Below, piece by piece: positions 2,500 through 38,835 of a stretch of 64,000 nt of DNA (positions are counted from its first letter, which is position 1; every line of letters begins with the position of its first letter). The stretch is from positions 48,174,001-48,238,000 of the forward strand of contig NC_043007.1 in the NCBI RefSeq assembly GCF_006345805.1. The letters run 5' to 3'. The notes under the pieces are model-generated. The model was not told the origin of the DNA. It ran no database searches and saw only the letters and a list, made by a program, of their open reading frames with translations. Origin of the DNA: Octopus sinensis. Taxonomy: Eukaryota. The position numbers and the translations under genes were made by a program.

Positions 2500-2567
<68 letters not shown>

Positions 2568-2600
2568 CATATATGTATGTATGTGTGTGTATATATATAT

Positions 2601-3628: not shown

Positions 3629-4061
3629 TATATATATATATGGATAGAACAAAAACAATAATTTAATGTAATAATTACCACTTTGTTTACATTACCATCA
3701 CATATGTATCAATTATTTTTGCATCTTAGCCAATGCATCTATCTATATTCACATTCTGAAGAGATTTACTTAAACCAGTAAATTGAAGCGATCATAAATG
3801 CTACTCTCATCACTGCTCCTTCCTTCTTTGTTATCTATTTAATTAAAGACATACCAGTGAAAACCACGAGTTTCCCATTGTTATTATATCCATTTTCTTC
3901 TCCTATATATATGTATGCATGTATGTATATGTGTGTGTGTGTGTGTGTGTATAGAGTGTTAGGTGTGATGTACAGAATTAAATACTGAGAAAAAATGTCG
4001 TCAGAATTTTGGAAAAAAATCCTTTTATTTCTTCATTATTATTTTGTTCCTAACATTGCAG

Positions 4062-4152
4062 TACTGGGATAAAGATTTGGAACTAGTTGCCCAAGCACGA
4101 GCTGAAAGCTGTAATTGCTCCCACGATAAACCTTATTTCCGGCAAATTCCTG
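4062..4152 (+). CDS. CAP gene exon A (phase 0-1): YWDKDLELVAQARAESCNCSHDKPYFRQIP
   Basis: ttgcag|TAC...CCTG|gtaaac; matches the CAP motif WDxxLxxxAQxxAxxC...H. Confidence 0.9.
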
Positions 4153-5639
4153 GTAAACTATAATTTATTTCTTCTCACAAGATTTACCACACTACCATAA
4201 AGAAATGGTTTTTGTCTAAGACAGTAAAGTGCCTTCAATATTTTGTTATTGCTGCCTGCATTCAAATCTAGCTATGATTAACTCTGTCTTTCATCCCTCC
4301 TATATTAATAAAATAATGCCAGTTTTAACCTGTATTGTTGTTGAATTTCCAGGGCTTGATAGGTATTTAAGACATGACCATTACATCGTTTTTCTGCCTT
4401 AATGTATCTTGGACTACATTATCCCATATGTCCTTGAATTTTTAAAAGAGGGTAAAATCTAATTTGAAACAGATGTAGCAACCTATTGTAATGGGTCAAT
4501 TGACTATATAAATGCTTCTCTGCTGAGAAATATTTGAGATATAACATTGTCGCTACTGTTTAACCACGGGAAGACCTTAACCTTTCATTACCATATTTAT
4601 TTTGAGATGCTCTGTGTTTCTTTCAATTATTTTAAATATAACAAAGAATTTAGTAAAATAACTTAGTTACTATTAAGCTAGTGTTAGGAACATAAATTGT
4701 GACTAAGTTTTGGTGGAAGATTTTAATTCAAAAAAAGTTTTGCTCATAAGGTTTGGATCAACCCATGAGTATAGAAAATGGCATTTGCCCAAGGTGCCAT
4801 ACAGCAGAATAGAAACTAGAAACTCATGATTGCAAAGTGAACTGTGTAATCATTCTGTCATACTGTGCCTACAATATGGAGGTAATGAGAAAATAAACCA
4901 TGGATGTCTAGTGAGTGGACCAGAAGTGATGCCAATAGTCTCATTATGACTACACTTTCTATAATTATAGGTTAATTACTGTAATTAGTAAAGACCCCTT
5001 GGTTGATTATATCTTTCCTTTATCTTGCTCTGCCTACTATAGTCTAGTATCTGCTATTGGCATCACTTCTGGTCCACTCACTAGACATCCATGGTTTATT
5101 TTCTCATTACCTCCATACTGTAGGCACAGTATGACAGAATATTACACAGTTCACTTTGCAATCATGAGTTTCTAGTTTCTATTCTGCTGTATGGCACCTT
5201 GGGCAAATGCCATGTTCTATACCCATGGGTTGATCCAAACCTTATGAGCAAAACTAGACAAACTAAATCTAAATAGAAGCCCATCAGATGAATTGTAATT
5301 GTAATTCATAGGCCCGCCTTTGTCACACATGCAGTCACACTGATTCTGCCTAAGAATTCCATTAAGAGTACACATCACTATGGAATACCCAACCATATAC
5401 ATGCTTAATGCAAAGCCATATACATGTTTAATGCAATGAGCATGGTAATTTAGTTGGTCAAATAATTGAACACCTATGATTGTAAATTCTGACCAAGATC
5501 CATTTACCTCCCTATGATACAAGTCGACAAATGAACTGGAACTACTCGGGAGCTAACAGTTTCTTCTTAGGTTGGTACTCCACCTCTGAGTCTCTCTCAT
5601 TTTTTCCCACCTTTATCTGTCATTATGTCTTTCTGCTTA

Positions 5640-5704
<65 letters not shown>

Positions 5705-6042
5705 ATCTATCTATCTCTCTGTCTGTCTATCTATCTATTTATCTATCATGTCTCTTTTAGCTTTTTCTGTCTTCCACTATGACACTTCTCTCTCACTCTC
5801 TTCTGCAACACCAAGCATTATTGAATTATTCCACATTGACTACAATCTCTTAAGATCTGACAAATAATTTCTAACATTGAGAAATATTTTTTTTCAGGAA
5901 AATTCCACACTGGTCAAAATTTAGCCAGACAAGTGGACAGTTGGGCAGCAGCCATACATTCATGGTATGATGAAAGGAAAAGCTTTACTTATGGTGTCAC
6001 TAATGATTTCTCTAAAGTAGGACGTTATACAGAGGTAATGAA

Positions 6043-6114
<72 letters not shown>

Positions 6115-8010
6115 TATTATTATTGAGTGAGAGAGCAGTGCATGCCATCAAAGTGACACTGGGATATAATATACGAAGCCCAGTATACCCATCATGACTA
6201 CCCATATGATAAGGTTACACCAGGCACATGCATCACAACCATATGTGTGCGACATGGTGATCTCATATCAAGATAAACAGTATATGACCTTGCAGGTGAG
6301 GCCCAGTTAGAATTTTCTTCTGGTCGAGTAGCCCATTCCACTCAAAAGGTCCCAGAATAAGGGTTGTTTAAAGATGTTGAACGAACCACCCATGTTTCCA
6401 CAGGTGAATTATCCAAACCTCCAAGAATTCCTTTCAACACATGGCTATGATGCTCCCCCACTACTTTTACTCATGATCAGAGATGCACATATCGTCAGCC
6501 ACTAAGGGACATGCTCAACTGGTTAAGGTCAAACAACTGACATGCAAATCTGTGGTATTGAGCAGAATATTTGCTGTAGCCTGTCTTTTATACCAAGACA
6601 AAACAATGTACATGATAACACTTCCAATCAGTTAAGATCAGAAGCCATGAGAGCCACTGTCTGGGACTGCATCAGGGCGTTATTATTACTATTATTTTTA
6701 TTACTATTATTATCATTATTATTATTATTATTATTATCATTATTATTATTATTTTTATTATTTTCTTGTGTTTGACTTTTGCTTTGTGTTTGTATAAGTT
6801 GACTCCAATAATAATGATAATAATAATAATAATAACTATTATTATTATCATTCATATACATTCAACAGATTAGCTTGTTGGAAAAGCAAAGAATCCTAAC
6901 ATCGGGCTACAAGTTGCCTTATATACCAAGAACCCTCCTATCAGGTCACAGCAAGTACCCTTAGATGCCAAGAACCCTCCTAAGTATCCTAGCTTTCCCT
7001 AATAACACTGTTTTCTGGAGCTGTATTAAACTGGGTTTTATGCCTATCCCCTCTATCCACATATTCAGATCTTTAGGGATAGTTCCCAATGCATCTATAA
7101 CTACTGGGATACATTTTACCCGCACTTTCCATAGTCTCTATAATTCAATAGTTAATGTTATCATCGTCATCATCATCATTGGTTGTTTTGTAAGAAGCTT
7201 GTTTACCAACCACATGGTTCTGGGTTCAGTCCCACTGTGTGGCACCTTGGGCAAGTGTCTTCTGCTATAACCTAAGGCCAACCAAAGCCTTCTGAGTGGA
7301 TTTGGTAAACAGAAACTGAAAGAGACCCATTGTATATATGTATATATATATCTATGTGTGTGTGTCTTTGTGTCTGTGTTTGTCAACCGTTACCACTTGA
7401 CAACCATTGTTGGTGTGTTTATATCCCCATAACTTAGTAGTTCAGTCAAAGAGATCAACAGAATAATTACCAGGCTTTAAAAAAATGTCCTAGGGTCGAT
7501 TTGTCTGACTAAAAATGGTGGTACTCCAGCATGGCCACAGTCACATGACTGAACAAATAAAAGAATAAAAGAATTATTTGATGTAAACTCTTAGCTTATT
7601 TTGCGGGGTATAATGAAAAGTGTCTGCTGTCCACATCCAGCAGACTAAGGTGACACTTGTTTACTGATCATGCTTCACTTTGCAGAGGACTCTCGCAGTT
7701 CCAGTCAATGATGTTTTTTGTAGGTGTTCTACCTTCACAATTGCACCAATCTTTTTCAGCCATGTTGGTAGTTGATGGCTGATACTTCCAAGCCTGCCAA
7801 TTACTACTGGTATCGCGTCCACTCTTTTCATTGCCTACAACCTGCATATTTCCCACTTCAAATCACCATAGATGTTCAGTTTTTCTTCTTTCTCCTTGAT
7901 TCTGTTGTCACTGGGACATGCTATGTTGATTATCATGCAAGTTCTTTTATTTTTGTTCATCAGAACATCAGGTTTCAGATGTTTCATCTAATGGTCACAC
8001 TGAATCATTG

Positions 8011-8048
<38 letters not shown>

Positions 8049-11000
8049 TATTATTATTATTATCATTATTGAGTGAGAGAGCAGTGCATGCTATCAAGGT
8101 GACACCAGAGTAAAATATACGAAGCCCAGTATACCCATCATAACTACCCGTCTGATAAAGGTACACCAGGCACATGCATCACAACCACATGTGTACAACA
8201 TGGTGATCTCATATCAAGATAAACAGTGCATGACCTTGCGGGTGGGACCCAGTTAGAATTTTCTTCTGGTCGAGTAGCCCATTCCACTCAAAAGGTCACT
8301 GAATAAGGGTTGTTTAAGGCTGTTGAATGAACACCCATATTTCCACAGGTGAATTATCCAAACCTCTAAGAATTCCTTTCAACACACGGATATGATGCTC
8401 CCCCACTACTTCTGCTCATGATCAGAGATGTACATATCGTCAGCCACTAAGGGACATGCTCAACTAGCTTAGGTCAATAATATTATTATTATTTGAGTGA
8501 GAGAGCAGTGCATACCATCAAAGTGACACTGGTGTACAAATATCAGAAGCCCAATATACCCACCACTACTACCTGTCTCATAAGGGTACACCAGGCATTG
8601 GGGACTCATATCAAGATAAACAGCACATGGCCAAGTAGCCCATCCTGCTGAAAGTTTTCCTGAATAAAGTTTGTTTAAAGATGATGAGCCAAACACCAAT
8701 GTTTCCAGAGATGAATTATTCAAACCACAAAGAATTCCTCTCAACACATGGCTATGATGCACCCCACCCCATCGCCCACTGCTCCTACTTGTGATTAGAG
8801 ATGCATATATTGTCACCTACTAAGGGACATGCTCAAGCAGTTATGGTTAAACAATGAATGAGCAAATCTGTAATGTTAAGCAGAATATTTGCTGAAGCCT
8901 ATCTTTTATAGCAAGACAAAACATGTACTTGATAACACTTCCAATCAGTTAAAATCAGAAGCCATGAGAGCTGCTGTCTGGTACAGCAGCAGGGCATTTG
9001 TTACTAATATTATTGCAAGCAGAGGACTTAAAAGGTATACATACACACATATATACATGCATGCATACATACATACATACATACATACATACATACTTAC
9101 ATACATACATACATACATGCATACATACATACATACATACATACATACATACATACATACATACATACATACATACATACATACAAGCATACATGTATGT
9201 ATATATGTTTGTATGCATGCACGGGTGTGTGTGTGTGTGTATACATATGTATATAAATGAAAAAGAAACTTAATTCCACAGTAATAGAAATATAAAAGAA
9301 TTGGCTTGGGAGTTCAAAATGCACCTGGGTCTTAAAACAAATTGTAAATTTTTTAAAAGAAGTCATTAAAGTATCATACTAGTTTCAACAATATTTTGTT
9401 TTTCAGGGGTAAATATAAAATATGAAAGAGGATAAAAGTTTAATAGAGAATGCACTGAAGAAAGTTCCATAACCATATAACATGCTAAAACCTATTGAAC
9501 ATTTGATTTTTTTTTTTTACATCTAGAGGATAATTAATTTAATTACCCCCACTAATTACAGCTGTGTGGAGTTAATGTAATAACCTCCACTAGTTATAGG
9601 TGTAATAACCATTACCAATATGTCTTTATTGTGTTTGTATTTTTTAAGATGGTACAAGCTAAGACTATAAGAATCGGCTGTGGCTTTGCAAAATGTTCAA
9701 GCATGGATTTCTACGTCTGCCATTATGGTCTAGAGTAAGTAATGCATTATATATATATTTCATCATGTCGAACCATTAATCCCTAAACATTTTTTCTCTC
9801 TCCATTTTTTTCATTATCTTTCTGTGTTTTTACTCTTAATTCTTTGTCAAAGAGTGTAAGCTTGAAATATCAAAGACTTTTCCGTTCTTCCCAAGCATTA
9901 ACCTAATGCACCTGCTTGTTGTTCCCTCACCTGTCTTTGTCTTTTGTTTTGTGTAAATTTGAACTATATATATATATACGCACATGCATGTGCACATACA
10001 CACACACACACACATACACACCTTATAACATATTAGGTTGAAAAGAAAAGTCCTGTTGCATTTTTTACATGCTCATGTTGAGAGTTTTCTATACTTCTAG
10101 TAAAAATAACCATTAATATTTACACTTGGATTGTTTCTTTTTCTCAGAAGATTACTTTATTCCATAGTGATTACATTTGTACTGATTTTACCCTTTTAAA
10201 CTGACTTTAGATCAGACCCACATCAAACATGCTATATGAATATCTCTGAAACCTCACCAGTATATCACAGTACACCTAGGTATATCTAAAAGCTCACTAA
10301 TACATTGCAGTTGACCATTTTAGCATCACTGCTCTTCCAGCTCAACTATCTTTGTATCAGGAACTTATATATGAGCTGATATAATATTGTGTGACATTCT
10401 TGAATATATTTACACTGAAGTGATATACTCCGGATGAACTCACAATATAATATCAGGAGTATGCCCTTACTTTGTGATATTCTCATTTTCTTTATAATAT
10501 TAACAAGTGACTCTAACTGGCAAAATAATCAGCTTATCCGGGGTACAGATCTCCTGATGAACTGGCAGTACTGCCATCTACAGCATGGAAATATTCTCCT
10601 AATGAACTAACAATACAGACATCAGGAGGATGTATCTGCTCTGAGGTGATATACTCCTGTAGAACCAGCAGTACAGCCACCAGGAGAAGTATCTCCCTAC
10701 TATGAAGATACATCATCATCATCATCATTACCATCCTCCTCCTCCTCATCATCATCATCATCATTATTTAGTGTTTGTTATCCATGCTTGCATGGGTTAC
10801 ACAATCTGACTGGAATTGGTAAGCCAGAGAGCTGTACCAGGCCCCAGTCTGGTTTGGCTTGGTTTCTATGGCTGGATGCCCTTCCTAAGACCAACAACTA
10901 CACAGAGTATAGTGAGTGCCTTATATGTGTCACCAACATGAGTGTTTTTTACATGTCACCAGCACAAGTGCCTTCTACACGTCACCGGCACGAGTGCCTT

Positions 11001-12346
11001 TCACATGTCACTGGCCACGACTACAATTTCACTTGGCTTGACATGTATTCTCAAGCACAGCAAATCAGCAAAAGGACTCGATCACTTGTCATCGTCTCTG
11101 TGAGACTCAACATCCAAAGATCATGCTTCACCACCTCATCCCATGTCTTCCTGGGTCTGTTTCTTCCTTAGGTTCCATCCACAGTTTAAGATACATACTT
11201 CTAATACACATACATCAGGAGTATATCTCTACTGTGAGACATTTACTTATAATTGGTTTAAAACTTTTGCTATTTCTTGTTTAAAGCAATTTCATTATAT
11301 ATGTCTACCCAAGAATACACTAGCTGTTATGAAACACTATGCTCCCTGGAGCAGATATCAATCTATCATTGCTAGTTTTGTTTTTAACCCTTTAGTATTC
11401 AGGTTATTCTGTCAAATGTAATGCTTATGTAATCGAATTGTTTTGAATTAATCATGCAAAAATATTGTAGCATGGAAATTTTGAGGATGCGATTGCTTAT
11501 TCTTAGAATGACATTGTAAGATAAGTGTGCAAGGCTAGATCCAGCCAGTTTGAATATAGAACAAGTAGAATATCTGGGCTGGATATGGCCGGTTTAAATG
11601 CTAAAGGGTTAAGGTACCAGAAAAAAAGGAAACTCCTTCTGCTATTTGGTTACATGCCTTTATATTCTGAGTTCAAATCCTCCCTGTGGCAGTCTTACAT
11701 TTAAGTCTTCTGATGTTGATATAATAACTGTCAAACAAGTACTAAGATTGATTTGAAGTAGACTGTATCTTTGGAATTGTTGTTCAAGCATGACCTTAAA
11801 AATGAATGAAACAAATAAACAAAACCATATAGTAAAAATATATAAGGTTTTGCACAATAACAAAACATTCATTATCACAGAGAGAGACTCCTGCAGTATA
11901 AAATGATGATGTACCTATGCAAGGTGCCTAAAAGTGCAATATTAGAACCAACAACAACAGTGTAAACTGAAAAGATATGTGAGAGATTCTGACTGAAACT
12001 GGTCAATAGACTAATACTATTCTTGTAAGAGTATAAATATATCTTGTCATGGTGGTAGTGGTAGCAGTAGTAATAGTAGTGGTTGTTGTTGTTTTTATTG
12101 ATGTATGTTGTTGCTACTATGGTTATAGTACTGTCTGTATCGCTTTTATTTCAGAGCAAGCTCAGTGACAAACATATCCCATCCTTATGAAGTATGTTCA
12201 GAAACTACATCCTTAACAGGTCTGTTAACTATACTCTCTGACACACATGCAAGTATGCACACATACACACACGCACACACACAAACACACACACACACAC
12301 AACACACACACACACACCACACACACACACACACACACCACACACA

Positions 12347-12410
<64 letters not shown>

Positions 12411-15400
12411 AAATATATTTCAAGAAGAATACGTGCATGTCCACACACTAATGGGGTAGAATGTGATCCAAAAAATCACAATTTAATCATTCTGAAGTGG
12501 TAAAATATTCCTTGATATCACACTTCTTTTATCAAAAGTAATCCAGTCTTTTTGTTGACACAGAATTCTTTAAGCTAACAATGTCTTTATTATAATGGAC
12601 AAACATGTCGTATATGATTTTCACCAAAGACAGCATAAATGAAATAAAATGTGAAGATGAAACTAAAAAGATTCTGAACTGAATACTTGATTTTGCATGT
12701 CAGAAAAGGGATTTAAAAAAAGGTTTATTTTTTTATGTAAACAGAATAAAGTATTAGACAATCTTTCAGGGAAAGTACATGAAACTATTTGTTCAGCAAT
12801 TTCTGTAAATATTTTTTATTTCATTTTTTTCTCAGTTGAATTGCTTATGTTTATGTATATTTGTGTATGTAAGTACGTGTTTACGTGTGTGTATGTAAGT
12901 ATATGTATGTATGCGTTTATGTGATGTATATATATTTGTGTATGTATGAGTATAAACATATACATGCATATAGGTACAAGTATGGCTGTGTGGTAAGAAG
13001 CTTGTTTCTCTAACCCTCAATCACTCTGCATGGCACCTTGGGCAAGCAAGTGTCTTCTTCTATAGCCTCAGGATGACCAAAGTCTTGTGGATGGATTTGG
13101 TGGATGGAAACTGAAGGAAGCCCATTGTATATATGTATATATTTGTGTGTGTATGTCTGTGTTTATCCCCACCCAACCCAGCCACTGCTATTGCTTGACA
13201 ACCAATGCTGGTTTGTTTATGTCCCTGTAACTTAATGGTTTGACAAAAGAGATCAATAGAATAAGTTCTAGGCTTACAAAGAATAAGTCACGAGGTTGAT
13301 TTCTTCAACTAAAACCCTTTAAGGCAATGCTCCAGCATAGCCACAGTCAAATAACTGAAACAAGTAAAAGAAATATATAAAAAATACATACACATACATA
13401 CAATTACATACACACAAATACAAACACATACATACACACATACACACATACATACATACATGCATGCATGCATGCATGCATGCATGCATACATACATACA
13501 TACATACATACATACATACATACATACATACATACACAAAAGATACATAGACACAAGCGATTTAGCTGCAAAAAAGAAATTAAAGAAATGGAATTTTTTT
13601 ACAGAAATTGCCAAACCAGTTTGACCTCTCATGTACTTTCTCTGAAAGATTGCCAAGTATTACAGTGGCATGGTTTGAACCTGCTATCTTCCCATTAGTA
13701 GTGCAGCATCATTATCAGTCCAACCAATATATAAAATTTCTATCAAACTGATTCATTGATCTATATGTCATTGGTAATATTCTTTTATGTTTCTATCATG
13801 TAGATTGTCAGGGTGATGTTTGTCTAAATGGTGGCACCATGGACCCTGAAACCTGTCAGTGCCACTGCACAAATAACACTTTTACATCTGAACCACTTTG
13901 TGGCAGTAAGTATACTTTATCTACATTGACAGTATTTAGTGGCAAACCTATACACACACACATATACACACACATGTACAAAGGTAAGTCAAAAATTATA
14001 CACACTTTTGTTTCTGTGGTTTATTAAAACAAACGCTGGGGTTGAGAGATTGCGTCATTTTGTTTCTAAAAATACTTCTTCCAGCAGATAATAAAAATAG
14101 CTAAAAGGTTGGCTGGCTACTGGTGTATTTCTGATAGAATGATGTTGGTACGGCTTCAAGGTAAACTGTTTGACGCAGTAGTGATTCAGTGCTATGCTCC
14201 TACATCTGACAGTAATATTGAAGAGATAGATGATTTTTATGTCCAATAGGATGAGGTAGAGCTGCAGTGCAAATCACGTGATATTAAAATCATCATGGGA
14301 GATGTAAGTGTATGTATGTGTATGTATTATGGGAGACTTCAATGTGAAAGTTGGGGAGAGTAAAGACGGTGAAACTGTTGGATCATTTGGTATGGGTCAG
14401 AGGAATGAACGAAGTGAGAGGCTAGTTGGGTGGGGCAAGGAAAATGGTTTGATCATAACAAACATGTTTTTCAAATATCATCTGAGAAACCTGTACACAT
14501 GGAAAAGTCCTAGACATGGTTGCCGGAATAAAATTGAATTCATCTTGATCAATGAAAGTTTTCGAAATTCAGTGCAAAGGGCCAGGACGTATTCAGGAGC
14601 CGATTCTGATACTGATCATATATTGCTTAGCAGAAAAAATCAGACTGAAATTAAAGAAAATCTATTGGAAGAAGACTGCACCTCAATTACAGTTAAAGTT
14701 GCTAAAATTAGACAATGATATCAGGACAGGGTTTTGCCAAAACGTCATGGATCAGTATGATGGAAGACCACAGTCAAAGGTCTCTACACTGATGATGGAA
14801 GGAAAGAAAAACCAGAGATAAGCAAGCCAATGGATGGCCATATGATTACAGCAGCTGAAATCAAGCAGGCTATGGACCAGATGAAAAGTGGAAAAGCGAT
14901 GGGAAATGATAACATTGTGTTTGAACTTGTAAATGCTTTGGGGAATTTTGGAGTAGAAAAATTAACAGAGATAGCGAACCATGTTTACAACTCAGGGGAT
15001 GTTACTGAAGAAATACTGGAATCAATCTTCATCGCCTTGCCTAAAAAGTCTGAAACAATTGAGTGCAAAAATCATAGAATGATAAGCCTAATGAGTCATG
15101 TGACAAAGATTATTTTGAGAATGGAGTTGAATTGAGTGAAAGGTAGGTACTATTAGGGGAAACCTATCAGTTCAGCTATAGAACAGGAAAGGGGATGAGA
15201 AATGCAATTCTGTGCTTGAGGACGTTGATAGAAAAGTGCATAGAGAAACAAAAAAGACTTGTACATCTGTTTTATTGACCATGTGAAGGTATTTGACTGC
15301 ATCAAGCATGAAGAGTTAGTTAGAATGTTGGATGAACTCAAGATTGATGGAGAAGATCTAAGAATGATAGGAAATTTATATTGGGACCAGAAAGCAACCA

Positions 15401-17613
15401 TCTAAGTGCACGGAGAATTGGGCAACTGGATTGACATTCAGAAAGGTGGCTGGCAAGGTTGTATTTTGTCACCTGATTTATTCAACCTATATAGCGAGAA
15501 AGCTCTAAGCAAGATCAAGACAATTGCAGGGCTACAACTGCGGGAAAGGAATTATAACAATCTGAGGTACGCAAACAATACAGCTTTCTTTGCGGACCCA
15601 GAAGACAAGCTTCAGGGATTGATTAATATTATGACTGAGGAGAGTGGAAAACTTGGATTGATGATTAACTGCAAGAAAAACCTTCTCAATGGTCTATACC
15701 AAGAAGGCACATGGACCCGCATGTCGCTTGATGGTGAATGGAACTGGGATAGAGCAGAACAGTTTCATATATCTGGGAAGTTGGATAACATCAGATGGAA
15801 GGTCAGATAAGGACATCAAGTGCAGAATTGGGTTAGTAAAGAAGAGATTTAAGGATATGAGGAGCATTTTTTGTGCAAAGAGAATTGGAATGGAAATCTA
15901 GAAAAGACTATTGAAGTGCTACATCTGGTCAGTGCTAACATATGGATGTAAGTCTTGGACAAAAGCTACAGAAATGTGGTTTTAGAGAAAAATGCTTAGA
16001 ACTCCGTGTGTACCGAGGGTGACGAATGTGGAAGTGTTGAAGAAGATGAAAATGAAGAGACAGTTGATGGATACTATCAGAGAGGGGCAGTGGAGATTTG
16101 TTGGTCATTTTCTCAGAGAGGATGACAGAATAGAGCACTACATGGTGGAGACTGAGCTAGTGGGAAGGAGAGCAAGAGGAAGGCAGGGAATGAAGATGTT
16201 TGACCGGATGAAGAAGAGAATGAACATGCAGAGAAAGACTTGGGTGATGTTGCAAGAGCCAGAAATAAAAGTACCATTGATATTATTTACAGGATTGTAA
16301 ATCACGACGCTATAATAAAAAACCATTTGCACTGAAAGCATATATATATATATATATATATATCTCCCTTACTTTCTCTCTATCTAGCTACCTCCTTTGC
16401 TCTCTTTTTCACTGTTTCTCCTCTATCCATCTCTTTTGTCAACATGTTCTAAGTATTTACTACCCAATACATAAATATCCTCAAACAGTAATCTCATTAT
16501 ATTTTTTTTATAGTGAACTGCTCCCTGGGTTATGATCCTGCAGACTGTTCAATGAAATACACTGTCAATGATTGCTCCCTACATCCTCATGTAACCATGA
16601 AATGTCCTTGGCTTTGTGGAATCTGTCCATGTAAGTTAGAATTTTTTATTACTACACATATATGAAAATAAACATAATTTAATTTCAGCACTATTACTCA
16701 TAATTTATTATTTATATATTTTATATCTATTGCCCTCCCACAGAAACAAAAGAATCTTTCCTGGAGTTCCATTTTTAAGCAAGTAATTTAGTATGCCTAC
16801 CTGACAGCAGATATTAACTCTCTTCCTAGCATAAGCCTTGAATGTGTATGCGTATGCATGTATATGTGTGCATGCATGCACACACACATACACACTTATA
16901 TATATAAATGTATGTTTATGTATTTGTTTTGCAAGGTTCTTTTTGTGAAACCATGTGTTGAAACAGATATTATTATACTTAGCCAATTAAACACACACTA
17001 TATATTTGGTTTTCACTTCAGCTTTATTATTATTACCATAGTTTCTGTCAAAGCTCTTTCATCACACATCCTTTGACCTTTTCATTGACTCTTTATCCCA
17101 TGTCTCTCATCTTGTTCTGCTTATTCCATTTTGTCTTTTTATGATTTAATATAAATATATTTTTAAGTAATGCTGGCTAAATGTTAAGCAACATAAAGGC
17201 GATGCTAACAAATAAAGACAAAAACAAGATATTGTATCACTCTACATTCTACATAGGTTGTTTAACTCTTCTATTATATTTCAGGAAATCTTCCCTCCAA
17301 ACTCTTGGATTATTTTCTATCTTATATTTGATAATGGAAGCTTTCCCAGAATATATATGTTGTTTGATATAATATCTTGTCATCGGTTTTAGTTATTGGT
17401 ATCACACCTAATTTCTTGCCCGCAGTGCTTAGAGGTCTTTTTGAAAATATCTTATTTGCACATTGCAATTACCTTATTCTTGTTTTCCAGATGCTGAATA
17501 TGTAACCACCAATAATACAAGAGTGACAGGTCAGAATGGTTGTTTCTTCATCATCATTATTCAATATCCTGCCACAGTGGGGCTGTGGCTGTTGCAAAAT
17601 TCATTTATTATTA

Positions 17614-17664
<51 letters not shown>

Positions 17665-17672
17665 TATTACTA

Positions 17673-17705
<33 letters not shown>

Positions 17706-17711
17706 TATTAC

Positions 17712-17774
<63 letters not shown>

Positions 17775-18670
17775 CATTATTATTATTATTTTAAAAGGAT
17801 TGGTGTAACTTCTCACAAATGTAAATAGGCAATACAAAGAGTGTGATTCGATTGCAATAGATATTTCATTTGTTGAACGATATTTCGACAGCTAGCCTGT
17901 CTTTGTCGAGTTCAGAATAAAAAGTGATTCATAGAAATTCAAATTCAAAAGATTGACCGAGTGCAACCAGCGTTTCTACATTGATAGAATGACATCATCA
18001 GTCTTCAATTTTCAAGTTTACAACTGACAAAAAACAAAAAGAAAGAAAGAAAGAATGGGGAAAAAGGAAAAAGAAGAATATTTAATCAAACACCTTTGTG
18101 TAAATATGATGAAATTTCCCTGTCATTTTCTTCATAAAGACAGGCAAGCTGTCAAAATATCATTCAACCAGTAAATTATTTATTACAATTGCATCATACT
18201 CTTCATATTGTCTATCATTATTATTATTATAAGCTAAGGTGGCCAATTGGCTGAATTGTTAGCATGCTAGACAAAATGCTTAGCAGTATTTCACCCATGT
18301 GTTCTGAGTACAAATTCCGCCAAGGTCAACTTTGCCTTTCATCCTTTTGGAATCAATTAAACAAGTACCAGTTACACACTAGGGTGGATGTAGTCAACTT
18401 AATCCCTTCTCCCTAATTTGAGGCTTTGTGCTTCCAGTAGAAAAGATTATTATTATTATGATCTAAGATGGCCAGCTGGCAGAATTGTTAGCATACTGGA
18501 TGAAATGCTTAGCAGTATTTCACCCATCACTGTATTCCAAGTTCAAATTCCACCAAGGTCAACTTTCATCCTTTCAGGAGCGATAAAATAAGTACCAGTT
18601 GAACATTGGGTTGAGGAATTTGATTTATCCCCTCTCTTAAAATTGCTGTCCTTGTGGCAAAATTTGAAAC

Positions 18671-18706
<36 letters not shown>

Positions 18707-21700
18707 CTAGTGTATTGCCCATGCATAGGTTTGTCCTGCCATTCCTTTTCAAATTCTTTTTTCATTCTCTTCCTGCATTCATTAGATTTCATTGCATCAA
18801 GGTCTCTTACATTTTTAAGGTACCAAGCTAGGTTGTTTTCTTTGCTTATGACACAGTTTTCACAAATTATTAGTCCTCTACCTCCTTTTTTCTTCCAACA
18901 TAAAGTTTTGCAACATCACTCCTTGCAAGGAGCTCCTTATGCACAGTCATCAATTTCCTAGTTTTCCATTTAATAACTCCTGCCCCACAGTGCATGAGGG
19001 ACACAGCCTATGTATTCATTACCTTAGTCTTATTCATTTCATTCAATTTACATGACATTACAGGTTTCACATCTTCATTTGTTTCTCTATGATCTTATCC
19101 AACTTAAGGAATCCCAAATCCTTGCATTCTTCCTCTCCTACTGTAATAATCTGACCATTTGCAAGCTCAGTCCCTCCACTCTTTGCTAGTTTTCCCCAGT
19201 TTCAGTATTACAACACCATTTTTTTTTTATAAACACCATCCTATCTGGATTAACCAGGTTTACAATAGATGTTAAGCTGTCAGTTTTGTCCTCATCTTTC
19301 ACAAATAACTTTAAATCAACCATTAATAACAGATGGTTGATCTTAATATCAATTAGCATATATCTAATTTCCACATTTCTAAGGACTTGGGTCAGGGAGA
19401 TCATGCAGATGACAAATAAGAGTGACGAAAAGCTGCCTCCCTGAAATATACCTTTTCATATGTTAACAGATCCTAAGTAGTCCCTAGAATAAATTAATAT
19501 CTAATATCCAGTGTGCAAAGTAGTAATAATAATAATAATAATAATAACAATATATGTCCTGAAGTAGTACCAGATAGTGGCTCTCGTGGCTTCTGATCTT
19601 AACTGATTGGAAGTGTTATCATGTACATTGTTTTGTCTTGGTATAAGAGATGGGCTACAGCAAATATTCTGCTCAACACCACAGATTTGCTTGTAAGTTG
19701 TTTGACCTTAACCAGTTGACCATGTCCCTTAGTGGCTGATGATATGTGCATCTCTGATCACGAGCAGAAGTAGTGGGGGAGCATCATAGCTGTGTGTTGA
19801 AAGGAATTCTTAGAGGTTTGGATAATTCACCTGTGGAAACATGGGTGTTCATTCAACAGCCTTAAACAACCCTTATTCAGTGACCTTTTGAGTGGAATGG
19901 GCTACTCGACCAGAAGAAAATTCTAACTGGGCCCAGCCTGCAAGGTCATGCACTGTTTATCTTGATATGAGATCACCATGTTGTACACATGTGGTTGTGA
20001 TGCATGTGCCTGGTGTACCTTTATCAGACGGGTAGTTATGATGGGTATACTGGGCTTCGTATATTATATCCCAGTGGCATTTTGATGGCATGCACTGCTC
20101 TTTCACTCAATAATAATAATAATAATAATGACAATAATGATAATAAAAATAATAGTAACAAAACTTAATTTTTTTAGCAACTAAATATATTGTATTTTGA
20201 TATTGTTTCTCCCAGCTTTTATATATGTTGCTATTATGCTTGCGGTATTTGGTATTTCATTTGTCCCTGTTGTGCCTCTTACTTCTGTACATGTTGCTAT
20301 TGTATATTGCTGTTGCTATTATCCTTGCAGTTAGTGCAGCATCATGCCAGTTGCTGTTGTACCATTTACTATTGTGACTGTTGCTGTTATGCCAATTGCT
20401 ATTATAGCTATTGTTATTGTGCTGGTATTTTATGCTTGAATTATCTATGCTGTTATTTGCCAGCTGCCATTGGAATTGTTGCTATTGAGACTGTTGCTAT
20501 TATGTTGTTGTTATATGTAGCTAGAATGTATGCTGATATTTGCTTGTTGCTATTGTGTTAGCTCCTAATGTACTAGTTGCTATTGCGTGAGTTGCTGTTG
20601 TGTCTGTTGCTATTGTGCATGCTGCTAATGTATCAGCTGTTATTGTGATTGTTGCTGTAACCGTTACGTATGTTGCCATTATGTGTGTTGCTAACCTATG
20701 TTCTGTTCCCCACAAAAGCTATCTCTAGTTTATCTTCTCCTACATTTCTCCTTTTCATCCTCTCTCTCTTTCTCTCTTTACAGAACTGACCACAGTTTAT
20801 ACAACCATGCCGTTTCCTGAAATTAATACAGCTTCAGGTAAGGATTTCATCTTAAAATCAAACGATTGATAAATTGTACACCAGAAATGTCATCATCAGA
20901 CTGTACTTTCACTAACTGCTGACTCCATTTGTCCATTCCTTAACTCTGAGAACACTAGTTCTAGGAGTACAATAAATCGGACACTTGAAAAAAGAGAACT
21001 ATGAGCTTGGCTCAACTTCATGTCTTCTAGCTTAGTTTGAAATACACTTAGTTTGAAATACATTACTGTATTGGTCTATGTTCAATTTCCTAGCTGACAA
21101 GGCACAATCCACTATTTTCCATAAACTTGACAAGGTTCAGATTTATCTTGTATAAAATTATGTCTAATAAATTTTCGGCATTTCTCAAAATAACAATGTT
21201 ATTAAGTCTACTAATGAATTTATAAACTGTAAAAGTGGATATATGTGCTCCTTGAATGACCGACCTACTTCACCTGTGCTCCTTGAAAGACTAACCTGCT
21301 TCATCTATTTCATAAGTCTTCAAATTAATACTGAAGTATCATCAAAAATTTCTTTCTTATTAGAAGCAATTATTTTTTAATACTAGAAAGATCATCATCC
21401 TTATTATCCTTATCATTGTTTTCCATGTCACTCAGACTGAATTCTTTGAGGCAGATACACTGGATACCATTATTATCATTATTATTATTATTATTTACTT
21501 TTAATCTGCATGTTTGTTGAAATCACTTGCCAAGACATACCCAGCACCCTAGGGTGAGTGAAGGATAAAGCTTAGGGAGGGGAAGTGGCAGGAGCAGTAG
21601 TGAAATATCGCCATGTAATACAACACAGACCATTAAATTGATAGGGGTTTTCTAAGGATACGGGCAGTATTTATTAGCACAAACTTTTGGATTTCTCTGA

Positions 21701-24104
21701 GACATAGTTCTCTGCTGTCTAGATGTTTCTGACATCCCCTTTTTGTCATACCTAGGGCACCTTCAATAACAGGAACAGTTCTTGCTTTAAAATACCACAT
21801 CTTTTGTACTTCAATTTCCAGGTCCTTATATTTACTTAATTTATCAGATATATTTTTATCAATGGGAACACTTACATCTATTAATCTACAAATATTTTCT
21901 TCTATGTCTTTAATGATTATGTTTCGTAGATTAGCCTGAATCATTCTGTCAGTGGCATTTCATCCGTTTTCACATTCGGAGTTCAAAGTCCACTAAAGTT
22001 GACTTTGCCTTTCATCCTTCAGAGTCAATAAAATAAATACTAGTTGAATACTGGCGTCAATGTAATCAATTTACTCCCCCTCTGAAATTGCTGGCTTTGT
22101 GTCAAAATTTGAAATTATTAGTATTATTAAGGCTGGTGGAATTGTTAGCACACTGGACAAAATGCTTACCAGCATTTCATTCATCTTTACTTTCTGAGTT
22201 CAAATTCCATCAGGTTGACTTTACCATTCATTCTTTTAGGGTTGATGAAATATGTTCCAGTTTTGCCATGGGGTCAATGTAATTGACTAGCCCACTCCCT
22301 GAAATTTCAGGCTTTGTGCCTATTGCAAAAAAATTTGTTGTTATTGTTGTTGCTGCTGCTGAGTGAAAAACTGCATGCCATCAAAGTGACATCGGGGTAA
22401 AATATACGAAGCCCAGTATACCCATCATGACTACCCATCTGATAAGGGTACACCAGGCACTTGCATCACAAGCATATGTGTGTGAGATGATGATTTCATA
22501 TCAAGATAAATAGCATGTGACCTTGCAACAGAGGCTCAGTAAGAATTTTCTTCAGGTTGAGTAACTCATCCCGCTCGAAAGGTCAATGAATAAGAGTTGT
22601 TTAAGGATGTTGAACGAAACACCCATGGTTCCAGAGGTGAATTATTCAAGCTCCAAAAAATTCCTCTCAAAACATGGCTATGATGTTCCCCCACTACCTC
22701 TGCTTGTGATCAGAGATGCCCATATCGCCAGCCACCAAGTGGCATGTTCAAATGGCTATGGTCAAACAACTGACAAAAAATCTGTGGTATTGAGCAGAAT
22801 ATTTGCTGTAGCCCATCTTTTATGCCAAGACAAACCATGTACATAATAACACTTCCAATCAGTTAAGATCAGAAACCATATCTATGTATTATATACATAT
22901 ATATATATGCATGTGTGTGTGTGTGTGTATATATATAAATATGTATGAAATTTTAAAATAAGATAAAATTTTTATAAGAATTTATCAAGTATTCAGCATG
23001 AAAAACCTCATAAGGGAAAAATTTTTGGTTATTCCCTTTAAATATATTTATTTATATTAAGGGCATTATTATACATAAATGCCTCATGCTATGGGGGACT
23101 CTTAAAGTCAAAACTACCATAATAAATACAGTGTACCGAATGCAAGGGAATACTCTTGAAGTGAGCTCCTTAAAAACAGAATCTGTTTTTAAGAAGCTCA
23201 CTTCGAGAGCTGCATTCTCTCAAGTTTGGTACACTCTATTTATTAGGGTAGTTCTGCTTTTAAGAGTCCCCCATAGCGTGAGGCATCTATGTATAGTAAT
23301 GCCCTTAATATAAATAAATATAAATATGTGTGCATATATATATGCACAGGCGCAGGAATGGCTTTGTGGTAAGTAGCTTGTTTATCAACCACATGGTTCC
23401 GGTTTCAGTCTCACTGCATGGCACCTTGGACAAGTGTCTTCTACTATAGCCTCGGGCCAACCAAAGCCTTGTGAGTGGATTTGGTAGATGGAAACTGAAA
23501 GAAGCCCGTCGTATATATGTATATATATATATATATATATATGCATGTGTGTGTTTGTGTGTCTGTGTTTGTCCCCCTAGCATTGCTTGACAACCGATGC
23601 TGGTGTGTTTATGTCCCTGTTACTTAGCAGTTCGGCAAAAGAGACCGATAGAATAAGTACTGGGCTTACAAAAAAAACGAATAAGTCCCGGGGTTGAGTT
23701 GCTCGATTAAAGGCAGTGCTCCAGCATGGCCGCAGTCAGACTGAAACAAGTAAAAGAGTAAAAGAATATATATATATATACATACAATTCTGTTGATTCA
23801 CAGAGAAGCATTAAATCACAGAGTTCAATATTTAGGTGTAAAGTATTCTTTGATAGGTTGTAACTGGAAGGCTCATAAATCCACGACCCCAAGTTACATG
23901 TTTCTGGTCATTCAACTGGTAAACTGATTCTGTTATTCTTTGAAAAGATGTGTTTGTGTATGTGTGAGCATGTGTGTGATGCAACAGTTATCTAATTATA
24001 CCATTTTTGCATGTTTTTTTACAGTTACCATCCGAGCTTTGAAACAGATGTTTATTGTATCTGCTGCTGTGTCCTGCTATTTCTTGATCCCTAGTAGCAT
24101 CTAG
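4062..24104 (+). CDS. 5'-partial multi-exon CAP(SCP/CRISP/GLIPR1-like)-EGF-ShKT protein with GPI-signal-like C-terminus
   Basis: Nine AG/GT-bounded exons with compatible phases total 771 nt (256 aa + TAG): YWDKDLELVAQARAESCNCSHDKPYFRQIPGKFHTGQNLARQVDSWAAAIHSWYDERKSFTYGVTNDFSKVGRYTEMVQAKTIRIGCGFAKCSSMDFYVCHYGLEASSVTNISHPYEVCSETTSLTDCQGDVCLNGGTMDPETCQCHCTNNTFTSEPLCGMNCSLGYDPADCSMKYTVNDCSLHPHVTMKCPWLCGICPYAEYVTTNNTRVTELTTVYTTMPFPEINTASVTIRALKQMFIVSAAVSCYFLIPSSI*. The start, signal-peptide and HNxxR exons were not found in the window. Confidence 0.9.
4581..4735. mobile_element. Truncated piggyBac-type MITE
   Basis: Begins TTAA-CCTTTC like the complete TTAA-flanked MITE at 11388; breaks off where the 4736 inverted repeat starts. 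Confidence 0.5.
4736..5255. repeat. Near-perfect 202-bp inverted duplication with a 115-bp spacer (intron A-B)
   Basis: 4736-4938 vs 5054-5255, about 4 differences counted by eye. Confidence 0.95.
5898..6034 (+). CDS. CAP gene exon B (phase 1-0): GKFHTGQNLA...SWYDE...VGRYTE
   Basis: tttcag|GA...GAG|gtaatg; GxNL, WYxE and GHYTQ-like CAP motifs. Confidence 0.93.
6125..6678. mobile_element. About 555-bp interspersed element family C, embedded in (ATT)n
   Basis: GAGTGAGAGAGCAGTGCATGCC...GACTGCATCAGGGC with (TAT)n on both sides; 5 copies in the window. Confidence 0.85.
7180..7575 (+). mobile_element. SINE family B
   Basis: CCACATGGTTCTGGGTTCAGTCCCACTG..GGCACCTTGGGCAAG..CCAGCATGGCCACAGTC. Confidence 0.85.
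7580..7995 (-). mobile_element. R4/Dong-type non-LTR retrotransposon 3' fragment (restriction-like endonuclease domain), pseudogenised
   Basis: Minus-strand translation KPDVLMNKNKRTCMIINIACPSDNRIKEKEEKLNIYGDLKWEI...IPVVIGRLG...GTARVL matches the RLE PD..D..K-Y signature. Confidence 0.8.
8071..8477. mobile_element. Family C element, partial
   Basis: Same sequence as 6125-6535; preceded by (ATT)n. Confidence 0.85.
8495..8995. mobile_element. Family C element with internal deletion
   Basis: In tandem with the previous copy, separated by a short (ATT)n. Confidence 0.85.
9649..9734 (+). CDS. CAP gene exon C (phase 0-2): MVQAKTIRIGCGFAKCSSMDFYVCHYGL
   Basis: tttaag|ATG...GA|gtaagt; MVWxxTxxIGC and YVCxY CAP signatures. 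Confidence 0.93.
10770..11150 (-). mobile_element. SINE-like repeat (GGAAGGGCATCCAGCC core) with (ATG)n tail
   Basis: Reverse complement of the family at 28120-28410; adjoins (CAT)n. Confidence 0.6.
11388..11608. mobile_element. piggyBac-type MITE
   Basis: TTAA|CCCTTTAG ... CTAAAGGG|TTAA: TTAA target duplication with CCC/GGG termini. Confidence 0.85.
12155..12219 (+). CDS. CAP gene exon D (phase 2-1): hinge EASSVTNISHPYEVCSETTSLT
   Basis: tttcag|A...G|gtctgt; PY motif follows the CAP core and the phase fits both neighbours. An alternative donor GAA|gtatgt exists at 12191/12192. Confidence 0.8.
12980..13375 (+). mobile_element. SINE family B
   Basis: Same core and 3' end as the other B copies. 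Confidence 0.85.
13804..13905 (+). CDS. CAP gene exon E (phase 1-1): EGF-like DCQGDVCLNGGTMDPETCQCHCTNNTFTSEPLCG
   Basis: catgtag|AT...A|gtaagt; CLNGG..C.C.C...C pattern. Confidence 0.92.
14030..16310 (+). mobile_element. RTE (BovB-like) LINE, near full ORF, decayed, in intron E-F
   Basis: APE motifs (IQCYAPT, IMGDFNVKVG, YTWKSP) and RT motifs (NHRMISLMSHVTKI, QGCILSPDLFNLY, LRYANNT for YADD); many stops and frameshifts. Confidence 0.92.
16514..16630 (+). CDS. CAP gene exon F (phase 1-1): ShKT domain MNCSLGYDPADCSMKYTVNDCSLHPHVTMKCPWLCGICP
   Basis: ttatag|TG...T|gtaagt; six Cys spaced Cx8Cx8Cx9Cx3Cx2C with terminal CPxxCGxC. Confidence 0.92.
17491..17529 (+). CDS. CAP gene exon G (phase 1-1): stalk YAEYVTTNNTRVT
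   Basis: tttccag|AT...G|gtcaga; open frame and phase-compatible, but short with a weak donor. Confidence 0.7.
18234..18670 (+). mobile_element. Two tandem SINE family A copies separated by (ATT)n
   Basis: Two GGCCA(A/G)(T/C)TGGC heads, at about 18239 and about 18470. Confidence 0.8.
18760..19420 (-). mobile_element. R4/Dong-type LINE RT fragment, pseudogenised
   Basis: KINHLLLMVDLKLFVK (for HLLYMDDLKL), followed by AVSLMHxGAG, RKLMT and KLYVxRKxGGRGL-like segments on the minus strand; (TTA)n/(AAT)n nearby on both sides. Confidence 0.8.
19556..20108. mobile_element. Family C element, opposite orientation to the other four
   Basis: Reverse complement of 6125-6678; (AAT)n on both sides. Confidence 0.85.
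20200..20700. repeat. Degenerate trinucleotide tract (TGT/TGC/TAT)
   Basis: About 500 bp of TTGTTGCTATTG-like units. Confidence 0.8.
20784..20837 (+). CDS. CAP gene exon H (phase 1-1): stalk ELTTVYTTMPFPEINTAS
   Basis: long pyrimidine tract then tttacag|AA...G|gtaagg; Thr-rich. Confidence 0.82.
21500..21945 (-). mobile_element. R4/Dong-type LINE 3' fragment (RLE domain) ending near (AAT)n
   Basis: ORF 21633-21944: LIDVSVPIDKNI...KYKDLEIEVQKMW...VPVIEGALG...NTARILRK. Confidence 0.88.
21960..22330 (+). mobile_element. Two tandem SINE family A copies
   Basis: GTTGACTTTGCCTTTCATCC body at about 22000 and a second head at about 22132. Confidence 0.75.
22361..22878. mobile_element. Family C element
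   Basis: Same as 6125; preceded by (TTG/CTG)n. Confidence 0.85.
23044..23321. repeat. About 278-bp imperfect palindrome with a 1-nt loop (centre 23181)
   Basis: AAAAACAGA-A-TCTGTTTTT centre; the left arm is the same family as 2601 and 3088. Confidence 0.9.
23346..23765 (+). mobile_element. SINE family B, complete
   Basis: GGCGCAGGA..TGGC...GGTTCC..GTTCAGTC head through the GAAACAAGTAAAAGAG tail. Confidence 0.9.
24025..24104 (+). CDS. CAP gene terminal coding exon: VTIRALKQMFIVSAAVSCYFLIPSSI*
   Basis: tttttacag| acceptor in phase 1; hydrophobic tail then TAG at 24102-24104; AATAAA downstream. Confidence 0.8.

Positions 24105-38760: not shown

Positions 38761-38835
<75 letters not shown>

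Follow-up and report, generated by a model that had tools for sequence, protein, structure and literature searches.

The window, a 64,000-nucleotide stretch of Octopus sinensis contig NC_043007.1, carries on its plus strand (4062-24104) nine GT-AG exons that splice into 771 nt and encode an open frame of 256 amino acids (Table 1). Each acceptor is an AG behind a polypyrimidine tract, each donor is a GT, and the phases fit along the whole chain; every intron from the EGF-like exon (13804-13905) onward is in phase 1. The encoded sequence runs from the last two thirds of a CAP domain through a reduced hinge, an EGF-like and a ShKT module and a 31-residue Thr-rich stalk to the segment SVTIRALKQ, the hydrophobic stretch MFIVSAAVSCYFLIP, SSI and the stop. 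This frame was identical at 255 of 256 positions to the last 256 residues of the Octopus vulgaris protein CAI9730330.1, listed as 'uncharacterized protein LOC115217114 isoform X4'; as that protein was annotated independently, the match indicates that the nine-exon chain is not a set of chance open reading frames. An earlier note on this DNA had proposed the same exon chain and domain order, which agree with the gene models of two octopus species; its end of the exon starting at 20784 was corrected to 20837. The gene is real and already annotated, and both gene and family are present in public databases.

Table 1. Coordinates of the coding exons and associated features of the gene in the window
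Feature	Position	Strand	Sequence and remarks
Exon, CAP part 1 in window	4062-4152	+	YWDKDLELVAQARAESCNCSHDKPYFRQIP, then G split by intron; phase 0 in, 1 out
Exon, CAP part 2	5898-6034	+	KFHTGQNL...WYDERKSFTY...GRYTE
Exon, CAP end	9649-9734	+	MVQAKTIRIGCGFAKCSSMDFYVCHYGLE; strong donor GA|gtaagt
Exon, reduced hinge	12155-12219	+	ASSVTNISHPYEVCSETTSLT; one Cys, one NIS sequon; located by tblastn of XP_014791245.1 and splice sites
Exon, EGF-like module	13804-13905	+	DCQGDVCLNGGTMDPETCQCHCTNNTFTSEPLCG; phase 1-1, 102 nt
Exon, ShKT-type module	16514-16630	+	MNCSLGYDPADCSMKYTVNDCSLHPHVTMKCPWLCGIC-P; phase 1-1, 117 nt
Possible alternative end	16631-16672	+	ShKT-exon donor unused, giving ...CPCKLEFFITTHI, TGA at 16663-16665 and AATAAA at 16667; predicted from sequence
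Exon, stalk part 1	17491-17529	+	YAEYVTTNNTRVT; phase 1-1, 39 nt; one NNT sequon
Exon, stalk part 2 and candidate omega region	20784-20837	+	ELTTVYTTMPFPEINTAS; phase 1-1, 54 nt
Last coding exon	24025-24104	+	VTIRALKQ spacer, MFIVSAAVSCYFLIP, SSI; stop TAG at 24102-24104
Candidate polyadenylation signal	24247-24252	+	first AATAAA past the stop codon; pattern match

The frame is 92% identical to the O. bimaculoides ortholog XP_014791245.1, named "cysteine-rich venom protein latisemin-like", which shares the hinge, stalk and tail exons. A tblastn search with this protein exposed the hinge exon and the 39-nt stalk exon, and matched the last exon at 24 of 27 aligned residues. The hinge exon aligned to the PY..G..C hinge of the relatives, and the 39-nt exon is of the same type as the PYA.Y exons with which the linkers between modules of CAI9730330.1 begin. 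The first exon (4062-4152) was supported by its AG/GT sites and the fit of its frame, by identity to CAI9730330.1 and by a Pfam CAP match that starts at its residue 2. An alternative chain, in which the CAP exon was joined straight to the EGF-like exon through a weak donor at 9727 and the stalk exon was omitted, was discarded because it creates a TAA at the junction between the ShKT exon and the exon at 20784. A Thr/Ala-rich open reading frame on the minus strand at about 20520-20715 lies within a minisatellite of 15/30/60-nt periods and was likewise rejected as stalk sequence.

The first 17 or so positions of the CAP profile and all upstream parts lie outside the window, which consequently does not contain the whole gene. 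In searches with XP_014791245.1 by tblastn, positions 1-4061 contained neither a further CAP exon nor an exon for a signal peptide; tblastn detected no CAP gene in the window besides this one, and an Rfam search of the window returned no matches. Homologue searches with the CAP-to-ShKT sequence and with the C-terminal 130 residues as queries gave no matches, and no Logan transcript of the gene was recovered.

In the O. vulgaris annotation, CAI9730330.1 is a protein of 1934 amino acids with a gene range of 287 kb. A single signal peptide (residues 1-24) and a single hydrophobic tail flank six CAP-hinge-EGF-ShKT modules, which are joined by linkers rich in Thr and Ser; hydrophobic 13-mers occur only at residues 6-21 and 1917-1931. 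The window corresponds to module 6 alone, so that the single CAP-EGF-ShKT protein of the earlier note becomes, under this annotation, the last unit of a six-module protein. Modules 2 and 5 share 94% identity, modules 3 and 4 share 87%, and these pairs look like recent tandem duplicates on sequence comparison. The XP_014791245.1 model begins within the Thr-rich linker after module 5, lacks a signal peptide of its own and looks 5′-incomplete.

The CAP domain was recognized by Pfam PF00188 at profile positions 18-117 of 117 (E=3.1e-16 and 7.6e-16; 60 bits against a cutoff of 21.1). We take the conserved His/Glu/Glu/His tetrad of the CAP superfamily to sit in the motifs C..HS/HD, GEN, W..E and GHYTQ. 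This tetrad is not kept in module 6, where the corresponding residues are H (CSHD), Q (GQNL), E (WYDE) and R (GRYTE), with GQNL and GRYTE standing in place of the GENL and GHYTQ of other CAP proteins. The Gln of GQNL was invariant across a 38-sequence family alignment, and GHYTQ is kept in modules 1-4 of CAI9730330.1. Both by sequence and by fold, the closest solved structures were vertebrate and snake-venom CRISPs (pseudecin, natrin, triflin and stecrisp; by fold, E ~1e-14 over 231-255 aligned columns), with alignments that cover the CAP domain and the hinge and extend into the ICR/ShKT-like domain; the Pfam Crisp domain itself gave no match. The octopus protein differs from these single-module CRISPs by an EGF-like insert that separates hinge from ICR, a stalk and a hydrophobic C-terminus, all of which the CRISPs lack. 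Its hinge retains one of the four Cys usual in CRISPs, and the EGF-like module is inserted after it; the full C..C...C...LC hinge is kept in Lingula and other relatives.

The two small cysteine-rich modules were less readily recognized. The EGF-like module has an atypical spacing (C-x4-C-x10-C-x-C-x-C-x10-C) whose six Cys were invariant in 35 relatives. It had no Pfam EGF match, giving just a CXCXC repeat (E=0.011), and its family profile had no EGF match in the PDB. In an AF2 model built on the ortholog XP_014791245.1 the module was predicted with a pLDDT of 88.7, and EGF modules made up about 26 of its 31 Foldseek matches, with TM values of 0.5-0.65 but E values of 2-10. In the ShKT module, C3, C12, C21, C31, C35 and C38 were invariant in 35 relatives; the terminal C-x3-C-x2-C is present, together with a CP..C..C pattern, and the module aligned to the ICR of snake CRISPs. 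Pfam ShK matched none of the 38 family members, and the three best PDB matches of the ShKT family profile were ShKT peptides aligned over their whole length, at weak E values of 0.011, 0.025 and 0.28. Support for the two assignments is weak but consistent.

Downstream of the ShKT module, the Thr-rich stalk YAEYVTTNNTRVTELTTVYTTMPFPEINTAS contains one N-x-S/T sequon (NNT) and not the several that had been claimed, since 'NTA' is not a sequon. A usual GPI signal combines small residues at omega and omega+2, a short polar spacer and a hydrophobic stretch at the extreme C-terminus. In a rule-of-thumb scan, the order N-T-A, SVTIRALKQ, MFIVSAAVSCYFLIP and SSI conformed to this layout, in agreement with the earlier note. 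By the same rule of thumb, the best-fitting candidate omega site is the Asn of EINTAS, with Ala at omega+2; the omega region of XP_014791245.1 differs, with ESNT and an in-frame difference of two codons. The hydrophobic stretch of about 15 residues is of moderate strength (Kyte-Doolittle value of 2.3 over 13 residues) and includes Ser, Cys and Tyr. In the AF2 model the tail forms a helix at ortholog residues 378-394 and the stalk is disordered. GPI anchoring of the octopus protein is thus a prediction that fits the sequence rules.

The hydrophobic tail was also found in relatives. Among 92 representatives of the CAP-EGF-ShKT architecture, 33 carry a hydrophobic C-terminus, and in 37 the chain stops no more than 12 residues past the last ShKT Cys. 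Considering only extended C-termini, 33 of 55 have a hydrophobic stretch that comes within 10 residues of the end, vs 0.29% of internal 30-residue windows of the same proteins. The stretch reaches to 0-10 residues from the C-terminus in the family, with small residues 8-12 positions upstream, and a few relatives have 10-13 residues beyond it. Members with a tail were found among cephalopods (Sepia), gastropods (Haliotis and Littorina) and bivalves (Mactra, Saccostrea, Solemya, Argopecten and Sinanodonta), as well as in the brachiopod Lingula, the bryozoan Watersipora and the annelid Owenia; some of the sequences are contigs derived from RNA. Logan contigs of 2.3-2.5 kb from several runs carry, as an uninterrupted open reading frame, a single-module form (308 amino acids) with signal peptide and tail. 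The predicted tail is a feature of the family and not specific to octopus, and tail-less members of secreted type appear to coexist in this lophotrochozoan family with hydrophobic-tailed members of putatively anchored type.

GPI-anchored CAP-family proteins include mouse GLIPR1L1 and yeast Pry3, and prototoxins of the Ly6/uPAR group (lynx1 type) hold a toxin-like disulfide-rich module on a GPI tether beside its target. The likeness of the octopus protein to these prototoxins is one of idea only: their three-finger fold is unrelated and does not occur in the octopus protein, and the comparison carries no information on a target. A further parallel is given by the ascidian Urabins (HrUrabin and CiUrabin), GPI-anchored members of the CRISP family, of which HrUrabin becomes smaller after PI-PLC treatment of intact sperm and acts in gamete binding (PMC9265791). 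From their description, the Urabins share with the octopus protein a CAP (PR-1) domain and attachment to the cell surface by GPI, which for the octopus protein is predicted from sequence; on the other hand, their description names a PR1 domain and a site for GPI, with no mention of EGF-like or ShKT modules, and they are not multi-module (PMC9265791). The domain combination itself matches the description of molluscan CAP-ShK type II proteins, in which a CAP domain is followed by a Cys-rich region mixing EGF-like and poorly recognizable ShKT-like modules that standard HMMs miss, as Pfam did in the present family. This type comprises CreCAP-ShK 4-7 of Cumia reticulata, belongs to a clade that includes Conus Mr30 and Tex31, and has orthologs across molluscs (Gerdol et al. 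2019, PMC6409789). In contrast to the octopus gene, CAP-ShK type II proteins are described there as secreted salivary proteins with a single CAP domain, the term 'GPI' does not occur in that article, and the portions considered here make no mention of a hydrophobic tail or a six-fold module repeat. The earlier note had named a common, already characterized architecture as a finding that would count against its reading, and this applies in part: to the combination of CAP, EGF-like and ShKT, which is widespread in Lophotrochozoa and described (PMC6409789), but not to the joining of several modules with a GPI-type tail, a modestly new variant. No new kind of biology is implied, because the combination of domains is known, as are CAP proteins with a GPI anchor.

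Altogether, the window probably holds the 3′-terminal part of a large gene of the CRISP family from an O. vulgaris-group octopus, encoding module 6, a Thr-rich stalk and a predicted GPI-type signal. The protein would enter the ER through a single N-terminal signal peptide located outside the window; such a peptide is present in CAI9730330.1 and in single-module relatives, and absent from XP_014791245.1. Its cysteine-rich modules would fold and its Thr/Ser-rich linkers would be O-glycosylated. GPI transamidase would then cut near EINTAS, leaving a 29-residue propeptide made of SVTIRALKQ (9 residues), the 15-residue hydrophobic stretch and SSI, and the protein would stand on the outer leaflet as a chain of CAP/ShKT modules. 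Nearest the membrane would be module 6, the most divergent module and one that has lost conserved CAP motifs. More tentatively, the octopus protein may be a GPI-tethered 'poly-CRISP' with six CAP-EGF-ShKT modules on mucin-like linkers, an extreme member of a membrane-anchored lophotrochozoan CRISP branch that would act at the cell surface, in gamete or cell recognition or in local ion-channel control, and not as a secreted toxin. As a conjecture by analogy with the ascidian sperm proteins, its likeliest function would be surface recognition or adhesion, or else local channel modulation by the ShKT modules.

The six-module protein might instead be an annotation artefact that merges tandem paralogs, module 6 being a gene of its own with a signal-peptide exon upstream of the window. 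Since all relevant introns are in phase 1, splicing that reads through from one tandem paralog into the next would preserve the frame, and the model could have joined neighbouring genes into one; the close similarity of modules 2/5 and 3/4 is compatible with this, and most relatives, RNA-derived ones included, have a single module. We nevertheless regard such a merger as rather unlikely: CAI9730330.1 has no internal segment resembling a signal peptide or a tail, XP_014791245.1 starts in a linker with no signal peptide of its own, and two-module models exist in Haliotis (one signal, one tail) and in Mactra (one tail). The tail of module 6 would be the same under either gene structure.

Other readings concern the C-terminus. 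The protein could be a secreted CRISP of saliva, venom or mucus, with transcripts that mostly end after the ShKT exon or a tail propeptide removed with no lipid added. The 37 short-ended representatives would agree with this, as would the gastropod CAP-ShK type II proteins, so far salivary and treated as secreted in the portions of PMC6409789 considered. Read-through of the ShKT-exon donor also leads to a stop after 13 codons with an AATAAA directly behind, making a short isoform possible. That donor (CAT|gtaagt) is strong, however, and in the gene models of both octopus species the ShKT exon is followed by the tail exons, with the exon at 24025 last, as the earlier note had it. The predicted use of the tail exons draws on these two gene predictions and on family conservation, and the tail is kept in two octopus species and recurs across phyla; secretion thus seems improbable as the main fate. 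Still less probable is a type I transmembrane anchor, with the C-terminal helix in the bilayer and a three-residue cytoplasmic end. The helix of the AF2 model and the longer ends of a few relatives would suit it, but the uninterrupted hydrophobic stretch is just some 15 residues long with no basic residues behind it, and the placement of stretch and small residues across the family is the usual GPI layout.

Because of database names derived from snake toxins, CAP/CRISP proteins of cephalopods and other molluscs are routinely counted among venom components. The CAP-ShK and Urabin literature considered here (PMC6409789, PMC9265791) does not note a membrane-anchored lophotrochozoan CRISP branch as such. 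Roughly one third of the family may be cell-surface proteins, and the octopus gene may encode a six-module array. In that case, venom-gene catalogues that include these proteins would be overstated, and the tailed members would become candidates for surface recognition, like the ascidian sperm CRISPs, or for locally tethered ShKT modules.

The DNA of the window is animal genomic; it is AT-rich (G+C about 35%), with many microsatellites and retroelement fragments, and no long bacterial-type ORFs were present. Short open segments in the stop-to-stop translation of the forward strand carried CAP motifs, six cysteines in an EGF-like arrangement and an ShKT-type C-x3-C-x2-C. A concatenation of five exons matched CAP in Pfam (E=3e-16) and aligned by sequence to solved snake-venom CRISP structures from the CAP domain through the cysteine-rich C-terminal domain (E ~5e-15). 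Scanned in full with HMMER, a set of 1.84 billion representative proteins yielded 1421 matches, two of which were decisive: P0001, a 1934-aa protein of Octopus vulgaris (CAI9730330.1, "uncharacterized protein LOC115217114 isoform X4"), and P0002, a 400-aa Octopus bimaculoides ortholog with 92% identity to the query (XP_014791245.1, "cysteine-rich venom protein latisemin-like isoform X1"). The gene is already in public databases, under an uninformative or venom-derived name. Mapping of P0002 onto the window located two small exons, the hinge exon and a stalk exon, completing a nine-exon model (see the table). An AG acceptor with a pyrimidine tract precedes all nine exons, GT donors follow all internal ones, the phases fit, and the 256-aa spliced product differs from the last 256 residues of P0001 by one mismatch only (E for G). 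These features confirm the candidate gene, including the exon chain and the domain order up to the tail exon proposed in the earlier note, and the exons and tail are very probably real. They also assign the window to an octopus belonging to the O. vulgaris group.

The window contains the gene end only, and in the O. vulgaris annotation the gene, spanning 287 kb, is not a single CAP-EGF-ShKT unit but has six modules. Bases 1-4061 of the window contain neither the first ~17 CAP-profile positions nor any upstream part of the gene. P0001 begins with a single signal peptide and ends in a single hydrophobic segment; between these lie six CAP-hinge-EGF-like-ShKT modules in a row, each ~255 aa long and separated from the next by a Thr/Ser-rich linker (19-88 aa). 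Its hydrophobic 13-mers (Kyte-Doolittle hydropathy of at least 1.8) lie at residues 6-21 and 1917-1931 only, so the model has none of the buried signal peptides or tails expected if complete genes had been crudely fused. The P0002 model begins within the Thr-rich linker after module 5 and lacks a signal peptide, as would fit a longer transcript. Haliotis asinina and Mactra antiquata have models with two modules and one tail. Every intron from the EGF-like exon to the gene end is in phase 1, and the exons for the EGF-like module, ShKT and stalk are of the symmetrical 1-1 type, so that splicing between tandem paralogs would necessarily keep the frame. Modules 2 and 5 (94% identity) and modules 3 and 4 (87%) appear to be recent duplicates. 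We consider a six-module product likely. Outside the window, the linker that joins modules 4 and 5 of P0001 (residues 1214-1301) has KYCPQHLQGRQNPTEC, resembling the module start KYCPRLFQGIKGHTAC, with no CAP domain after it; this may be what is left of a lost module, or an exon wrongly predicted.

The CAP assignment in module 6, the last module, is firm. An AlphaFold2 model of the O. bimaculoides ortholog, built on a 57-sequence alignment, reached pLDDT >90 at residues 90-345, and its best Foldseek matches in the PDB were snake CRISPs (E ~1e-14, 231-255 columns), with matches longer than those to CAP-domain-only proteins. The ShKT module has six invariant Cys; none of 38 family members gave a Pfam ShK or Crisp match, and the three best PDB hits of the family ShKT-module profile were ShKT peptides at marginal E values (0.011-0.28). 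The EGF-like module also has six invariant Cys, in the unusual spacing C-x4-C-x10-C-x-C-x-C-x10-C. Sequence methods did not detect EGF in it; it was modelled at pLDDT 88.7, and its Foldseek matches were nearly all EGF modules (TM 0.5-0.65) at non-significant E values. Because of these marginal or non-significant statistics, both small-domain labels are putative, if reasonable. The full four-Cys CRISP hinge is kept before the EGF-like module in relatives such as a Lingula protein, and the most fitting description of the family is that of a CRISP in which an EGF-like insert separates the hinge from ICR/ShKT. GQNL replaces GENL throughout this family. Module 6 shares only 44-47% identity with the remaining P0001 modules, and it alone of the six has GRYTE for GHYTQ, VQAKT for VWAS and HYGLEAS for NYGPxGN (CAP exons 2 and 3); this module, nearest the membrane, may be without the usual CAP-site chemistry.

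The usual GPI signal has small residues at omega (the attachment residue) and omega+2, a spacer, and a hydrophobic stretch near the C-terminus. Following the last ShKT Cys, the product reads PYAEYVTTNNTRVTELTTVYTTMPFPEINTAS-VTIRALKQ-MFIVSAAVSCYFLIP-SSI. A simple scan with GPI-signal criteria placed N-T-A at omega to omega+2, ahead of a spacer of 9 aa (Arg and Lys among them), a hydrophobic stretch of 15 and three trailing residues, which leaves a propeptide of 29 aa; such a C-terminus fits the usual layout as far as sequence can tell. The stalk is Thr-rich as had been described (9 of 31 residues), with a single sequon (NNT) in place of the several claimed. The tail exons of the two octopuses agree at 24 of 27 aligned residues, and the omega region reads EINTAS vs ESNT, an in-frame two-codon change. 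Among the 150 best representatives, 92 had both cysteine motifs; 37 of these end within 12 residues past ShKT and 55 have longer extensions, of which 33 carry a hydrophobic 12-mer at most 10 residues from the C-terminus and four more have 11-13 residues trailing it. Applied to 30-aa windows inside these proteins, the same criterion picked out 0.29%; since the representatives are mutually related, the binomial P value is not a true probability. This recurrence is the strongest argument for a GPI-type tail. Tail-bearing members occur in cephalopods, gastropods, bivalves, one brachiopod, one bryozoan and one annelid; among the cephalopod ones are a "CRISP" of Sepia pharaonis and a paralog in O. 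bimaculoides. Several are known solely from Logan assemblies, including a 308-aa single-module protein with signal peptide and tail, whose ORF is uninterrupted on contigs of 2.3-2.5 kb found in several runs, as expected of spliced mRNA in animals with large introns.

A tail-less, secreted short isoform is conceivable from the sequence past the ShKT exon: its donor is strong, and if it were skipped the product would continue as ...CPCKLEFFITTHI to a stop 13 codons on, with AATAAA four bases past that stop. For the spliced product, a GPI anchor is predicted on balance. The anchored-protein interpretation is partly supported: the signal layout and a tail common among relatives favour it, and its single-module form is probably to be given up.

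GPI-anchored CRISP-family proteins include GLIPR1L1 and yeast Pry3, and the more distant matches in our search include multi-CAP proteins with GPI-like ends. On ascidian sperm, HrUrabin and CiUrabin are GPI-anchored members of the CRISP family, and HrUrabin, which binds VC70 of the egg coat, is cleaved by PI-PLC (PMC9265791). Two papers describe CAP-ShKT proteins of gastropod salivary glands and a "type II" clade, dated to the molluscan ancestor and including Conus Mr30 and Tex31; this clade has EGF-like motifs, ShKT modules that are hard to recognise and a low-complexity N-terminal spacer (PMC4460706, PMC6409789). The octopus gene matches this description in its CAP domain and its putative EGF-like and ShKT modules; the term GPI does not occur in PMC6409789, the paper on CAP-ShK type II. 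Since type II CAP-ShKT proteins, GPI-anchored CRISPs and multi-CAP proteins with GPI-like ends all have precedents, the octopus gene combines kinds already known. That the protein serves recognition or adhesion, or that its tethered ShKT modules act on channels, is conjectural.

Features of the gene and of other elements in the window
Feature	Position	Strand	Remarks
Exon 1	4062-4152	+
Exon 2	5898-6034	+	CAP
Exon 3	9649-9734	+	CAP
Exon 4	12155-12219	+
Exon 5	13804-13905	+	EGF-like
Exon 6	16514-16630	+	ShKT
Exon 7	17491-17529	+	39-nt stalk exon
Exon 8	20784-20837	+
Exon 9	24025-24104	+	tail
Read-through to stop	16631-16672	+	if ShKT-exon donor skipped
LINE-type retroelement	14100-16300	+	decayed; intron between EGF-like and ShKT exons
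LINE-type remnant ORFs	14308-14718, 14761-15132, 15406-15810, 15986-16297	+	stops and frame changes; 15406-15810 Pfam RVT_1, E=7e-07
Minisatellite	20190-20720		15/30/60-nt periods, unit ~TGTTGCTATTGTG...; intron before exon 8
Interspersed repeat	6198-6341, 8144-8287	-	several introns
Interspersed repeat	19892-20035	+
Interspersed repeat, further copies	6483-6635	+
Interspersed repeat, further copies	19599-19751	-
ORF, 189 aa	26888-27457	+	Pif1 helicase 2B domain, Pfam E=2.8e-14; downstream of gene
Retroelement remnant	37551-38972	-
Retroelement remnant	47595-49710	+
ORF, 597 aa	39936-41729	-	Asn/Ser-rich
ORF, 117 aa	41817-42170	-	adjoins 597-aa ORF

The LINE-type element has a strongly positive G+C skew (+0.30). 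The minisatellite carries a 123-aa Cys/Tyr-rich ORF on the forward strand and a Thr/Ala-rich ORF on the reverse strand; it has a coding-like look and is no part of the gene model. Copies of the interspersed repeat contain the near-identical pseudo-ORFs MEWATRPEENSNW...VVMHVPGV and MHISSATKGH.QLVKVKQLT..., and the repeat is probably a SINE or MITE-like element. The 597-aa and 117-aa ORFs had no Pfam match and are possibly an unclassified mobile element. The two retroelement remnants, one with a Pfam match to zf-RVT (E=4e-08) and one to RVT_1 (E=3e-13), show raised G+C (0.42-0.47), and the Pif1 ORF probably represents part of a Helitron-type element.
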